Source of the DNA: Salpingoeca rosetta
Lineage: Eukaryota > Protista > Choanoflagellata
Assembly: GCA_033442325.1 (NCBI GenBank)
Contig: JAWQFM010000030.1
Coordinates: forward strand, 228,750-292,749
Length of the DNA: 64,000 nt
Reading direction: 5' to 3'
The notes under the pieces are model-generated. The model was not told where the DNA came from. It saw only the letters and a program-made list of their open reading frames with translations, and did no database searches. Shown here piece after piece: positions 30,737-38,515 of this stretch. How positions within the stretch are numbered: position 1 is the first letter of the stretch; every line of letters starts with the position of its first letter. The position numbers were made by a program, and so were the translations under genes.

Positions 30737-31287
30737 TCACTTCTTCTGCTTGGCGCGCTTCGTTGCACCACCACTGCCGCCACCGCGTCGCTTGCCGCCA
30801 CCGCCACGGCCACTGCCACCACGACCAGCACCGCCACGGCGCTTGTTGCCGCGTGCACCGCCCTTGCTGTGGCCGCCGCTGCTGCCATCCACGCTGCCCT
30901 CCGATGGCGCGTCTGTGCGGATCACGGTTTCCGTCGCTGCAAGCAGGTCTGTGTCGTCCACGCGCGACGTACCGAGCGAGCTGCCTGGGAGGGTGAGGTT
31001 GCGGGCCTTGCGCGTGCGTGTGCGTCTGCCCGGCGCCCCGTACGGCGATGGCGCCGGCTGGAGATGAAGCTCACCGCCACTCGGGACATCAGACGATGCA
31101 CTGGACTGCTGCTGCTGCTGCTGCTGTTGCTGTTGACTGCGCAGGGCGGACGACGATGATGAGGCCGCAGCAGCGGCCTCGTCCACTGATGCACGGAGAG
31201 GGAACAAACGAGATGATAGGGGAATGTGAAGGGGTGGGGGAAGGAAGAGATGAGCTGTGAGAGCGCTTCTTGCTTGCGTCATGGACA

Positions 31288-31327
<40 letters not shown>

Positions 31328-34300
31328 CACGCACGCACACGCACGCACGCACACACACACACACACACACACGAAGATACTCACGGCTGAAGCGGCGCGG
31401 GGAAAAGGAGGAAAATCCGAGCGGGGAGTAGAGGTAGTTTGTGAAAGGCGATGGCTGGCCAATCAAGAACTGGGGTGACGCGAGCAGGATGGAGGGGTGA
31501 CCCGTGCCATCGCCGCTTGGGGAGCGCAGCTGCTTCTGTGGCGTCACGCTGCCGGTCTGCGCGCTGGTGCCGGCGAGCGGGCTGAACGGAGGATGAAACG
31601 AAGACTGCAGACACACGATTATGTCAGCAAGCGGGGTGTGCGTGTGTGCGTGTGTGTGTGAGAGAGGCGGTGGCGGAGGGATGATGAAAGGAAAAGCACG
31701 TGCATGCATGTCAACACAGGTGCGATCGATGCTTTGACAGAACATAAAATAAAAATAAGTATAGCAGAATTGTAGCTCGTGCTGTGCAGGTCCGAGCATG
31801 TGAAAGCTCATCCCAATTGCAAATGTACTGAATGGCGGGCGTTACTTACCAAATCAGGCGTGGCAAATGCCTCAAACGCGGTGGGTGAGTTGAGGTTGAT
31901 GGCAGGGAGACTTCCAGTCTGTGTTCGTGCGTGTGTACGTGTGCGTGAGTGTGGATGGATATGCAGACGAGCACGAGCAAAACAAAGGCACGACCAGAAG
32001 CGAGCACTGCGCAACACCGCAAACTACACCGCACCACACAACACATTACACAATACACACAATACATTACACACAGACACGCGCCTACCTTGAGCGGCGA
32101 GAACATCTCTGGGAAGAAAGCAGCGGGAAGGCGCGCTTGATCTGCAGCCAAGAGCACACACGTTGTGAGCACTCGAAGCCCGCAGCGCAGTTGCATAGCA
32201 TACCTACACTTTCACCCCCCCCCTCACACACGCACACAAACAACACGTCGCGCACCTTGTGCATTTGATGTCTTCGGCGGAGACTTGGGAGCGTCGTCGC
32301 CTTCTTGTTGCTGCTGCTGTGGTGATGATGATGAGTCATTGGTTACGTTTGGCGTTGGCGGCGCCTGCAACTGGCCGCTGTCCCACGCCTGATAGTAATG
32401 ACGACAGCAACAATGACACATGTGCGCCAGTGGTGATCCGGGGTGAGGAACGGAGGACAAAGACAAGTTGTACGGGAGGGGATGCAGTCGTGAAGAGCGT
32501 GATGACCACGGCTGCCTTCAAGTCACGCACAGACAAACAGACAAAGGAGTGCGTGCACATACACGCACGCACCTGCTGAAGAAATTGCATGCACTGGGCG
32601 TGTGCGTTTGCATCCGGGGGGCGAAGCGGTGACGGCCCGGTCATGTTGAGCGCAGACGCCAGCGACGGTGGCTGGAACCCTGCTGGTGTGGTGGGTCAAC
32701 ACATACGCGTGCGTGCGTGAGTGAGTGAGTGAGTGAGTGAGTGAGTGAGTGAGTGAGTGAGTGAGTGTGTGTGTGAGTGAGTGTGTGAGAGTGAGTGTGT
32801 GTGTGTGTGTGTGTGCGTGAGCGAGTGAGTGAGTGAGTGTGTGTGTGTACAGTTGCGGTTTTGTAACGGCTGCATCTCACCACATCAGACATCAGCAGCG
32901 CATGGCATGTGTGGTATTTACCATGTGGTTGCGGTGGTGGAGGAGGAAGCGTAGATCCTGTCCATCCAACAAGCAAACACAACACACAATAATGTGAACA
33001 TGAGCAATGCGAAGGCGACAAAATACGTCCTCCACCACCACCAAGAAACAAGTTTTGCTTCGCGTCTTTAGTTGACTCACCTGCTGTTTCATCCCTGTCT
33101 CTGCCGTCACCAGCAAAGAACGACTGCTTGCGTGACTGCGCACCATCTTCCTCTCCCACCACCGGCCTGTCCTGCTTGCGGTATTGCTCTCCAATGCGTG
33201 CAAGCATCGAGGATGCCTGTGAGTGCGACATCTGCCAGGGCACATTCGACTGTGCCCGCTCGCCCTGCTGTTGCCCTGCCTCCATTGCTTCACGTCCATG
33301 TGCCGCCGCTGTTTGGCTATCTGATACTGTTGCTGCCGATGCAGATGCGGAAGCAGCAGCCGTTGTCCCAGTCACCGAACCGTGTGTTTGTGTCGGCCCG
33401 TAGGCCTGCCCGGCACCCATGCCTTGCATCTGTGCGAGCAACGAGGCAACAACGGCCAAGTTCTGCGCCTGTTGCGGTGCCGGCTGCGGTGCATTCTGCT
33501 GCTGCAGACACAAAGAACACCCATGGGGATTGCATGCATGCACGAAAGTGGTGCGATGAGCGACACATTCGAAGCGAAGGCTTCGATTGACAACTATTGC
33601 TGTCGTTGGCAGCGCGCGCACACACACACACACACAGGCACACAGGCACACACACACACACGCGCACACACACACAGGCACACGCGCACATGCAGAGCAC
33701 CACTCACCCCTCCTTGCATGTGCTGATAAATGAGGCGGAGGTGGTTGGCAACCTGGAACAAGCGCAGCCCAATACGAAGAGAAGCAACAGCGGTCAGCAA
33801 CAAGCAGAGAACCACCACTCTTTTGCCTGCAGGCAACCACACGTGCACTCGTCCATCTCCTTTGAGCACCACGTCTACAATAAACCAACCAACCAAGCAA
33901 ACAAACAACGCACCGATGGGCTGATGCCGTGCATCAGTGTCGCGTGCGCGCTCGTTGGATCCGCGCTGGTGTGACCGTTTCCGTTTGCAGTCGCTGCCGC
34001 AGCAGCTGGGGAAGTGTTGTTGTTGGTGTTGTTGTTGTTGTTGTTGGTGTTGTTGTTGTTGTTGTTGGTGGTGGCCAGGTGTCCGCTGCCGTTGGTGGAT
34101 GTGGTGGCGGAGAGAGACGATGAGGAGCCAAGGCCTCGATCCGTTGGTGCGGTAGAGGTCGACCTACGATCGCAGCAGCACAGCAGTGGTGGTGGAGGTG
34201 GTGGTTGCCGTGGTGGTTGTGAGTCGACAGCTTCGCAAGAAGATCGCGGGAACGGTGACACACATCATGTGCGGCACGTGCGTTGAAAGACGGTTGACAG

Positions 34301-34378
34301 ATGCATGCAATGCATCAAAAACTCACTGTTGTTGTTTTGTCTCCTCCCTGCAAGTTCACGTCCGATGAAGAGCGCATG

Positions 34379-34410
<32 letters not shown>

Positions 34411-34879
34411 TTCCAGGAAAGGTAAGTTCAAATATCCATGCTTGCAAGCAACCTGAAGGACATGACACCGTGAGCACGCCTGAAGACGTGCGCGCCTGCG
34501 ACATTGCAGACATTCAGTGGACGTACTCTTTGGCAAGTGGGGATACACCGAGCGCGGTGGTGGCGGTTGAAACAGAACTGCGAACGACAGCAGGTGGAGT
34601 TGCGTTCTGCACAGAGAGAGAGGGGGGGGGGGCGACATGGTGGGTGAATGTGTGAGAATGAGAATGAGAGTGTGTGAGAGTAAATGCGTTTGAATAAGAG
34701 TGTGTGAGAGAAACGCACGCACGCACGCACGCACAATAAAGGCACAACGTGAGCGTGGCGTGCGGTTGAGTGTCCAACAACCAAGCGCACATCATCCACA
34801 GCACGCGACACTCAACAACACGAACCGTGGTTGATGTGGCTGCGCTGTTGTGGGTGGGGGTCGTGGTTGTGGCGGACGG

Positions 34880-34917
<38 letters not shown>

Positions 34918-35411
34918 GATGATGTGTGACGGCGGTAGTCTGAGGGGAGAGCAGAGGCAGCCCCATCATCTGCGCCTGTGCACTCGACAGCGGCGTGGAT
35001 TGGTACCCTGCAGGCAACGCCGATTGGGGTGCAATTTGCGTGGGCCAGAGGATGACGAGGGAGGAGGTGGTGGTGGTGGTGGTGAGCATGGACAAATGGT
35101 AACAAGAAGTGGAAAGGTGGAACTTAAAGAAAAGGCCGAGCGTCAACACACAGACACACATGCCTCATTCATTTTTCGATACGCACTCTCGCACGCGTGC
35201 GCACTCCCCCAATTCCCTTTACACACGCACACACGCACGCACGCACGCACACACCTGCGGCGAGGAGTTGCTTTGTCATGTCTGACTGCGGCTGTCCGCT
35301 GCCAGCCGGTGGTGGCATCATGAACAGCTGCATCAGGTTTGGCGGCATCGTACGCGTCCGATCAGGACCAACCTGCATCATGGCAATGTGTGTGTGTGTG
35401 TGCGCGCGCGT

Positions 35412-35481
<70 letters not shown>

Positions 35482-36822
35482 ACACAAGTATGTAAGCACA
35501 CAAGCTGCACATGTACATCAGAAAAAAGTGCAGCATTCACAGTCAAAGTAAAGCCTTTACAAGTCCCGAGATATCTCTTCCTCCTCCACCACCACCACCA
35601 CCACCACCACCACACGCACCATGGCACCCATCGGGTTGCTCGTGTTTGCGCTGGGCCGCTGACTGCGCGGGCGCGATTTCTTGCCTCTGCACGCACATAC
35701 AATCACAATCACACGCACACGCACACACATGTGAGTGCCATCGATTCAACCTGCGGCCAGGCAACACAACACCGACTATCCTCTGCGCCTCCCTCAGTCC
35801 ACTGCCACAACACACAACACCCCCAAGACCCCAGAGAGGCCAACGCACGTGCTGGTGGTGTCCAGGCGCTTCCTGCTGTTTCGCTTCTGTACGCGGTTCA
35901 TTCTTCGCTCCCTCTCCTCGCGCAGATACCTGCACCCACAGTCACACGTGCATGCGTGTGCGTGTGAGTGAGTGTGTCAAAAAACAGAGCACTCGTAGTC
36001 AACGGAAACAAGTACTGCGCCAACAACAACACCAACACAACCGTCACTACTCCAAGTTCCCCTGCCCTTGCGCTTTCATCGCCCGCCTACCTGCGCCCGT
36101 TCTTGGAGAGGTTCCCCGCTTCCAGCGTGTCCTTGAACTCCTTCATCTTGCCGGCGCCAAGGTCGCACACCACTTCTGTCAACGCGTGACATGCACAAGG
36201 AAGACGTGTCAATGGGGCACCGCACCAATCAATCTCACGTTAAGCAACACCAATACCACACGCCCTCCCCTCCCTCGCTGCAACCACCGTGTACACTGCT
36301 GCCATCACACACGCCACGTGCCATGCATGCACCTGGCAAGCGAAAGCCGTTGTAGGCGTCCCATCGTCGCCACAGCTCTTGCATGTATGGCTTCTTCGAA
36401 GGATCAGACTCAAACCCGCAATCCTGCCAGTGGGGAAAGGAATAAGCAATGGGAGGTGAGCTCTGTGTGTGCTGTGCTCGTGTGTGTTTGGTGCTACACG
36501 CTGAGCACCAGCCAACTCTGGTGTATCATGGATTCTTCATGAGCCACATACATACACATCGCCCTTGCACGCTCACATTGAACTCTCCCATGGCACTCGC
36601 TCACATAGAACTCTCCCATGGCACTCGCTCACATAGAACTCTCCCATGGCACTCGCACAACCCCCCCCCCCCAACACAAACACACACACGTACCACGAGG
36701 TATCGGGCGAGGATGGACTTTGGGTATTTGAGCAGGTCGGCCTCGTCGATGGTGTAGGTGACCCTTCGTCTCGGCGTCTTTCGAATCCGCGCGCCGGCGT
36801 CGTTTACAGCCATGCTCATCAT
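30737..36822 (-). CDS. Multi-exon Q/S/T-rich putative transcription factor with an N-terminal CNC/SKN-1-like basic domain
   Basis: Phase-consistent exons 36822-36694, 36423-36333, 36175-36091 and 35929-35849 give ...FRLPEVVCDLGAGKMKEFKDTLEAGNLSKNGRRYLREERERRMNRVQKRNSRKR. Many low-complexity exons follow (not all resolved), ending in basic, NLS-like ...GKRRGG...ATKRAKQKK* at 30737. Confidence 0.65.
36571..36656. repeat. 28-bp unit repeated 3 times (gctcacataGAACTCTCCCATGGCACTC), intronic
   Basis: Three near-identical copies read directly. Confidence 0.9.
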
Positions 36823-37357
36823 GACGGTCGGTTGAATGGTAGCTGGTGTAGCAAGCAAGGAGTGCACGAGCACATCACATCAACGGCAGGGAGAGCGTGT
36901 GTGTGTATGTGCGTGTGTGTCGCAACGTGAGCATCTTGACGACCCTGCAACGGTGGCTGATGGGGAAGCAGCCACATGCACTGTGTGCGCGTGTGTACGT
37001 GTGCCTGTGCCTGTGACCATGTTGCACCCCACCACCTTTCATTAGCACCTTCAACACCACCTTCATCATCATCACCTCGGCCACACACACACACACACAC
37101 ACACATACATACACACACACACACACACACCCCTTTGTTCGTGGAAGGAATACAAAGAAGGGGGGTGGAGCGAGCAACAAGACAACCAGGGCTGGTTGGA
37201 GACAAGGTCGTCAAGACAACTGGCAACGGCACCAACAAGCAGCAGGCAAGAAAGAGCCAAGGCAGACACGCACAGCCCGTTCAACGAACGTGAGGCAATC
37301 ACAGAGAAAAGTGAGCGGGCACGGCCAATGCAAGCGAAGGCAAGCACGTCAACAACC

Positions 37358-37418
<61 letters not shown>

Positions 37419-38515
37419 CACACAACACACACACACACACAACACAACGCGAACAACACACGGGTGCCACGCCGCCAGGCTTATGAACTGGCCACCAAGA
37501 TGAGCGCAGCTCTCCAACCGAAGGCGCAGCAACACACCAACCCATCAATCAAACACATCAACCACGCACGCGCGCCGTGCCAGGATCAGTGTGCAAACAC
37601 CACGCAGCCGACCAGCAAGCAGCGCCAAGGCAGTGTGTCGAACCCTGACAACCTCAACACACACACACACCTTGAGGATGGCAATGGCCAGCAAGACGAC
37701 GGCGGCAACGAGCACAGCACACGGTCAGGGAGGCCAGCACACACGGGCAGCGTGTTCCCCAACAACGGTTCGCTTGTTGAATGAGGGTGTCAGACCAAGC
37801 GAGCGTTGTGGCTATCAGTTGGCTCGCTTCCTCAGCTCTCAGCGTGGATGTGCAAGCAAGCAAGCAAGCCAGCACACAGCTTCTTGTCCTTCTTTCTGGT
37901 GGTCGGACAGACAACAGAAGGAAGCAGCGAGGGAGAGACCAGCAAGTGAACGTTGGACGTTGGCGGGGGGGTGGCTGGGTTGGCTGGGTTTGCCTCATTC
38001 TGGCGGCGTTCTTCACTTGCACTGCAACGGTTCATCCGCCCGTCAAAGCATCCACCAACCGCCACCAACGATTGACCTGGTCAGGTTTCGCTGCTGGGTT
38101 TGGGTGCGTTGTGTGGCTTGTGGTGTGTGGCGGGAGAGGCAGAAGTTCGTTGTGCGGTGTTTTGCTTGCTTGCAAGCACGCAACGCACTCAACCGAATGA
38201 TGTTTGGGATTTTGGTGTGGAATGTAGATTTCGCACGCGGCATGCGGGTGAAATGCGCATCAAAACCTTGTATCCACCATGCGACCATGCAATCATTTTC
38301 AAACGATCAGCGGCACAGGTCGATTCGTTGGAAAAGTCAAATTTGACCTTCACAGCAACGGCCCAAAGACAAAATTGCCCTGGCTTGACAACACAAACTC
38401 CCCAAAACAACAACCCTCATCAAATACAACAACCCCAACCAACTACACAACAACAACACAACAACAAACAGCAACACCTCGCACGAACAAACAAACCATC
38501 AAAGAAGCAAGGAGG

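Follow-up and report, generated by a model that had tools for sequence, protein, structure and literature searches.

The gene described here, on the minus strand of the Salpingoeca rosetta window (the whole stretch of 64,000 nucleotides that was analysed), is expressed and probably encodes a nuclear regulator of about 880 amino acids, in which the second half of an N-terminal domain would be a remote homologue of the CNC/Maf domain and would bind DNA as a monomer in the manner of nematode SKN-1. We give this reading a probability of about 0.6. The original prediction had proposed a zipperless domain of the CNC/SKN-1 type at this locus, and sequence, profile and predicted-structure tests now support it as a case of remote homology. 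Each of the CNC tests is weak or sub-threshold on its own (E values against the PDB of 0.04 or more), yet they agree on one common register and the likeness to CNC is beyond chance.

Structure of the gene and its relatives

The gene has at least 19 coding exons and extends from about 37.7 down to 30.7 kb of the window. Four public RNA runs were compared over positions 31800-37600, and the junctions were taken from contigs of a 2011 and a 2024 study. These contigs skip the introns 36422|36693, 36175|36333, 35926|36088 and 35686|35849, which have CT..AC ends on the plus strand. Since contigs that skip introns at GT..AG borders represent spliced RNA, the gene is expressed, and the junction check that had been proposed for this peptide came out exactly on the predicted GT..AG introns in the contigs of both studies. 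Runs X20 and X21, which are raw-read RT-PCR libraries, yielded nothing but chimeras at CA repeats and gave no information on the gene.

Upstream of the coding part there is a 5' untranslated exon at 37131..37219, where an RNA contig ends at 37221 and resumes at 37673, and a further untranslated exon that ends at about 37671 in the same RNA contigs. No ATG occurs within about 200 nt of transcript upstream of coding exon 1, the untranslated pieces being counted. Coding exon 1 (36694..36842) has its ATG at 36822 and 43 codons, and was placed by the joint 36422|36693 and by translation. From this exon come a basic arm (RKTPRRR) and the first of the helices in the conserved domain; its product has 74% identity to residues 1-43 of a protein of Microstomoeca roanoka (P0001) and a MMS(M/L) start that is kept in the orthologues. 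Exon 2 (36333..36423, phase 0 to 1, between the joints 36422|36693 and 36175|36333) provides a long helix (..ELWRRW..) followed by an RLP turn that aligns with Ile466-Pro467 of Nrf2, and its product ends in FRLP. The product of exon 3 (36091..36175, from RNA-contig joints) forms the CNC-like helices 2 and 3 (CDLGAG, then MKEFKDTLE, then LS) and is aligned, via the orthologues, with Nrf2 residues 479-495 and positions 11-25 of the bZIP_Maf model. Exon 4 (35849..35929, joints 35926|36088 and 35686|35849) encodes the basic helix, with the core ERERRMNRVQKRNSRKR, aligned with residues 499-517 of the Nrf2 basic region. It is followed by exon 5 (35620..35686, from the joint 35686|35849 and contig arithmetic), which encodes a Ser/Arg/Pro-rich linker devoid of heptad leucines.

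The spliced peptide thus stands as it had been placed, on exons 2 to 5 of the minus strand, with AG/GT borders, RNA contigs of two studies, and two relatives (P0001 and the environmental locus L014:650-817) in which it is uninterrupted. Its extent had been underestimated: the domain also includes exon 1 and the larger part of exon 2, and the product is a protein of some 880 residues and not a small peptide. Beyond the linker lie the Pro/Met-rich exon 6 (35255..35372, from contig pieces at 35261-35373, AG/GT borders and frame) and exons 7 to the last (30737..35007), placed by nine listed joints from 34826 to 31918, by the frame of each exon and by tblastn with P0001 as far as 30902; for exons 7, 10, 11 and 18 and for the last one the borders follow from GT/AG and frame only. 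On exon-by-exon translation one frame stays open across 18 exons. An RNA contig resumes at 31604, tblastn with P0001 carries the gene to about 30.9 kb, and the stop codon is near 30737.

The first intron of the coding part contains a unit of about 29 bases in three tandem copies (..ctcgctcacatagaactctcccatggca..) at 36560-36650, and long (GT)n/(CA)n tracts are found at 35388-35478, 37070-37130 and 37340-37450 and at most intron starts and ends, the minus-strand introns often opening with GTGTGTG or GTGCGTG. Raw RT-PCR reads stack up and form chimeras at such tracts (34713-34735 and 35710-35729).

The orthologue P0001, of 747 aa, was found in the M. roanoka transcriptome by an exhaustive HMMER search with exon 1. 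It follows the window gene exon by exon in tblastn, C-terminal motifs included, and its transcript encodes the peptide of exons 2-4 in one uninterrupted piece. A word search with P0001 led to XP_001749049 of Monosiga brevicollis (P0010), a protein of 1180 aa annotated as uncharacterized, with 48% identity over residues 10-129. Environmental relatives, reached through short mis-called ORFs, were present on contigs of three TARA metagenomes and on one Logan contig, with the intron positions kept, and on a further TARA contig (L014:650-817) exons 3 and 4 are fused into one. The basic core ERERRMNR(V/L)QK(R/Q)NSR(K/Q)R is nearly invariant among the orthologues. The S. rosetta genome also has a paralogue (C24:168262-168618, L016:2001-2357) that scores 99.8 bits against the family profile; its domain lies in a single exon, within an open frame that exceeds 900 codons and has a Q-rich tail, and its basic region is ERERYMNRIQQQRSRQRR, with Gln-Gln in place of Ala-Ala. 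P0011, from another assembly, is the orthologue of this paralogue. The searches covered the single exons of the window gene and the contiguous relatives P0001, P0010, L014:650-817, L016 and P0011. Two other candidates, P0003 and P0009, were rejected as repeat proteins whose weak matches add up. The annotated proteins of S. rosetta itself were never returned by the protein searches, even for exact exons, and such records may be excluded from them; absence from these searches is therefore no sign that the gene is unannotated.

Past residue 125 or so the protein is rich first in Ser/Arg/Pro and then in Q/N/T/P, with 13 Gln in a row at one place. Several short motifs in this tail (window 30900-32700) are common to S. 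rosetta and M. roanoka, among them SPLRPPDA..QC.QFLQQAWD.GQLQAPPTP, ARLP.AFFPEMFSPL, F..FATPDL, ILLASPQFLIG and RNLTLPGSSL..DDTDLLAATETVIRTD. These motifs may serve in docking or in regulation.

Likeness to CNC and Maf domains

The conserved helical domain comprises the first 125 residues or so of the protein and is compact at about 10-125. Numbered after Nrf2 (PMC9756947, verified on the A510Y chain of the PDB matches), the family keeps the equivalents of Ile466-Pro467 as (L/M)P, Phe481, Met485, Phe490 as Leu, Ile498 as Leu, Asp500 as Glu/Asp, Arg502, Arg504, Asn507, Val509, Asn513, Cys/Ser514 and Arg515, but not those of Phe468 and Leu495. Six positions of the hydrophobic core, those of Ile466, Pro467, Phe481, Met485, Phe490 and Ile498, thus carry a hydrophobic residue or proline. 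Within a conserved pattern R/K-E-x-R-x-R the equivalents of Arg502 and Arg504 do not vary, and at the position of Arg499 the clade of the window gene has Arg or Lys and that of the paralogue Glu. The family thus has the phosphate-contact set of the CNC-bZIPs (Arg499, Arg502 and Arg504 with Asp500). Of the bZIP signature N-x2-A-A-x2-(C/S)-R it has correctly spaced Asn, Ser and Arg, but in every member other residues stand in place of Ala-Ala. As had been noticed from the window gene, the usual alanines (Ala510-Ala511) are Gln-Lys, and this replacement is conserved, with Gln-Gln in the paralogue.

In Pfam-A, bZIP_Maf (PF03131) was the sole family matched, by three members and over model positions of about 10-60: residues 1-140 of P0001 (E 0.097, 13.7 bits), residues 1-220 of P0010 (E 0.012, 16.5 bits) and the paralogue (E 0.004, 18.1 bits). 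P0011 had no Pfam match. The proposed search with the bZIP_Maf model therefore gave the expected family in the right register, but at 13.7-18.1 bits against a gathering cut-off of 22 bits, which leaves all members outside the Pfam family. The window locus is likewise not among the matches listed in a six-frame bZIP_Maf scan of the genome.

The family profile was searched against the PDB (177,635 sequences) with three alignments, A1, A3 and A5. With A1 all five matches were NF-E2 p45 or Nrf2 (E 0.06-0.3); with A3 and A5 these were joined by BACH1 and SKN-1, the only other rows being CHIP and RPN7 at E >0.5. The top six matches of the family profile were all CNC proteins (Nrf2, NF-E2, BACH1; E 0.04-0.5), and no chain of Maf, Jun, Fos, CREB or GCN4 was found among the matches. 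Owing to this absence the signal is more than that of "a basic helix". The gapless alignment to the CNC and basic regions of Nrf2 that the original prediction had proposed was recovered in the same register by HMMER over 41-43 columns of Nrf2 and NF-E2.

The family was also compared by hhalign with eight S. rosetta loci above the bZIP_Maf cut-off, with a probability of 67-82% and E values of 5e-5 to 1e-5. The score of the real alignment was 35.4, as against 10.2 for a reversed template and a mean of 9.9 (maximum 22.5) for 200 column shuffles. Taken separately, the basic part (18.0) and the pre-basic part (22.2) each scored above their own shuffles.

These bZIP_Maf genes share with the family an accessory helix, followed by L(S/T) and an RRR..NR basic pattern. 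They differ from it in their coiled-coil tails, in having Tyr where the family has Gln and in scoring above the Pfam cut-off. At least ten such loci exist in S. rosetta (among them L001, L002, L003, L005, L008, L010, and L004 plus L009); the best, at G000:C7:1401331-1401597 (L001:1501-1767), reaches 84 bits over model positions 3-90, with the pattern W-D-E..L..M in its accessory region and a coiled coil in its tail. The spacing of the family is that of CNC without a gap, whereas it fits the Maf-like loci of S. rosetta only with a one-residue gap. The Maf proteins of the EHR-bZIP type (NRGYAQSCR) have Tyr at the first Ala position, where the family has Gln, so that it is not of the Maf type either.

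A conserved module of about 70 residues, encoded by exon 1 and the greater part of exon 2, has no counterpart in CNC proteins. Its exon-1 part (window 36694-36822, family residues 19-50), with the pattern D..L(V/L).YP...L..(F/Y)L, resembles the accessory region of the Maf-like loci. With the basic helix removed, hhalign scored it at 21-22 (E 0.0006-0.0025), above 100 shuffles, which could reflect a second accessory-helix unit of greater age or simply noise. An internal duplication of the domain was considered and rejected, the N-terminal half scoring 10.9 against the C-terminal half, inside the shuffle range; a homeodomain or TEA likeness of exon 1 was supported by no search.

This N-terminal module, the sub-threshold level of all matches to animal CNC proteins and the outcome of the searches of the protein atlas and of the atlas folds, which gave nothing related, would fit a helical domain specific to choanoflagellates and of independent origin, with an Arg-rich helix serving as a nuclear localization signal, in RNA binding or in docking, and with a convergent likeness to CNC. 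However, four kinds of test point to one family and one register, the PDB matches are restricted to CNC and do not include basic helices at large, the reversed and shuffled controls lie far lower, and the residues kept extend to the non-basic equivalents of Phe481, Met485, Phe490 and Ile498. An independent origin is accordingly unlikely in our estimate.

Predicted structure and proposed mode of DNA binding

The AlphaFold model of residues 1-140 of P0001 has a mean pLDDT of 80 (about 90 over residues 21-120) and predicted helices at 27-30, 35-44, 51-66, 76-78, 81-94 and 98-125; confidence falls beyond residue 125 or so, where the basic helix ends. The model of the paralogue (pLDDT 88) has the same layout. 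In these models three short helices lie on the start of the basic helix at a pLDDT of about 90, and the match to SKN-1 has a Z score of only 4.1-4.3. In a structural ranking by a search other than Foldseek, SKN-1 (1skn) was first of 48,161 PDB representatives for both models, at Z 4.3 and an rmsd of 3.5 Å over 68 of 74 residues for P0001, and at Z 4.1 and 2.7 Å over 66 of 74 residues for the paralogue. Nrf2 and MafA were lower in both lists, and in a second comparison NF-E2 had a Z of 3.9. Given that a Z of about 4 is equalled by unrelated helical proteins, it is the rank and not the score that constitutes the evidence, and the two models, which share most of their alignment, are not independent. 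Foldseek gave no significant row against the PDB (E >3); its top row for the P0001 model was NF-E2 (2kz5) and its row of best TM for the paralogue model was Nrf2 (7x5g_F; TM 0.43/0.53, rmsd 2.0). Within these limits the comparison of folds that had been suggested as a check points, for two predicted models, to the SKN-1 domain.

The absence of leucine heptads from the exons after the basic helix, which the original prediction had read from the window gene, holds for the whole family. No Leu is present at +10, +17, +24 or +31 past the signature Arg in P0001, P0010, P0011 or the paralogue. In the window gene a linker of Thr, Ser, Gly, Lys, Arg and Pro comes after the basic helix, and the tails of the relatives are Pro/Gly/Ser-rich. 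With such a linker in the place of the zipper, the protein would most likely bind as a monomer to one bZIP-like half-site, as nematode SKN-1 does. SKN-1 binds DNA as a monomer, and in the CNC motif the support helices hold the phosphate-binding arginines in place (PMC9756947). Nrf2, NF-E2 p45 and BACH1 have a zipper, which the family lacks, and pairing with small Maf proteins of the known kind is thus not expected; nor were Neh-type regions seen in the family.

By its predicted architecture the family would share with SKN-1 of Caenorhabditis elegans (1skn) a helical support of the CNC type, a basic helix of the bZIP type, the lack of a zipper and an N-terminal basic stretch. The likeness in sequence is weak (profile E 5.9). 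SKN-1 has Ala-Ala where the choanoflagellate family has Gln-Lys or Gln-Gln, and unlike in SKN-1 the basic arm of the family lies about 55 residues upstream of the support, from which an additional helical module of some 45 residues separates it.

A degenerate relative of the bZIP proteins could still be dimeric, either through the extra N-terminal module or through a Maf-like partner that bears a zipper. The genome has many genes of the bZIP_Maf type with coiled-coil tails from which such a partner might come, and the extra module (residues 20-66) is conserved and weakly resembles the Maf-type accessory region (hhalign E 0.0025). Yet no member has a coiled coil after the basic helix and both models consist of a single compact globular unit, and we therefore regard a dimer as quite improbable. 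That the frame arose by chance or from erroneous splice sites, and that no such protein exists, might be thought from the single exons of the window gene, which are too short and match nothing in Pfam or the PDB, but this is already refuted by the spliced RNA contigs, by orthologues that match the gene one exon after another and keep its intron positions, and by a paralogue at 99.8 bits.

For the monomeric CNC-like domain that we prefer, the following mechanism can be proposed. The accessory helices would pack on a bZIP-type basic helix that keeps the equivalents of Phe481, Arg502, Arg504, Asn507 and Arg515, and this support module would position the phosphate-contacting arginines, while Asn and Arg in the basic helix would read the half-site. 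The Gly/Pro/Ser-rich linker would end the helix in place of a zipper. The further contacts needed by a monomer could be supplied by the basic arm and the extra N-terminal helical module; the RKTPRRR sequence, which is conserved, flexible and of low confidence in the model, may be the counterpart of the SKN-1 arm. The Q-rich tail with its conserved short motifs might act as an activation or regulatory region.

In bZIP proteins of the Pap1/Yap type, which dimerize through a genuine zipper and have no CNC/EHR module, swapping the base-contacting Ala, Ala or Cys/Ser alters the half-site preference. The Gln-Lys found in place of the base-contacting Ala-Ala would likewise direct the family to a half-site other than TGAC/TCAT.

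Evolution and significance of the family

Two surveys of bZIP proteins place the origin of the MAF-NFE2 (CNC) group in animals, one of them leaving the ancestor of the two subfamilies unidentified and the other having no unicellular CNC orthologue (PMC4736632, PMC6213907). The published record thus agrees with the view, taken at the outset, that Maf and CNC proteins are animal innovations; the at least ten bZIP_Maf loci of S. rosetta do not. With these loci Maf-type accessory helices as such are not animal-only, and judged from sequence comparison they would weaken the published animal origin of MAF-NFE2. The JGI number of the M. brevicollis member is absent from the available part of the bZIP supplement of the first survey, and its accessions occur in no paper of the searchable literature.

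Lacking both a zipper and Ala-Ala, and scoring below the cut-off, the family falls outside the bZIP proteins proper, and Pfam thresholds miss it. The apparent novelty is the conserved family without a zipper, with its CNC-like spacing and CNC matches in the PDB, and not the first Maf- or CNC-like helix outside animals. The sequence data suggest that the CNC module of the animal type may be older than the animals, but the likeness is remote.

As the family belongs to another lineage than SKN-1, its lack of a zipper, by loss or by primary absence, would be independent. The fullest form of the proposal is that choanoflagellates have a family of transcription factors that bind as monomers, with a CNC support and a basic helix but no zipper, that arose independently of SKN-1 and that recognize a half-site of their own, set by Gln-Lys. 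Taken in all its parts this is a tentative proposal and rather doubtful; S. rosetta is genetically tractable. If the proposal is true, the CNC motif predates the animals, and the sister group of the animals may hold relatives of the MAF-NFE2 ancestor, or even a precursor stage that had no zipper. Beside SKN-1 the choanoflagellate family would be a second, independent zipperless domain of the CNC type, and hence a natural experiment in DNA binding by such a domain on its own.
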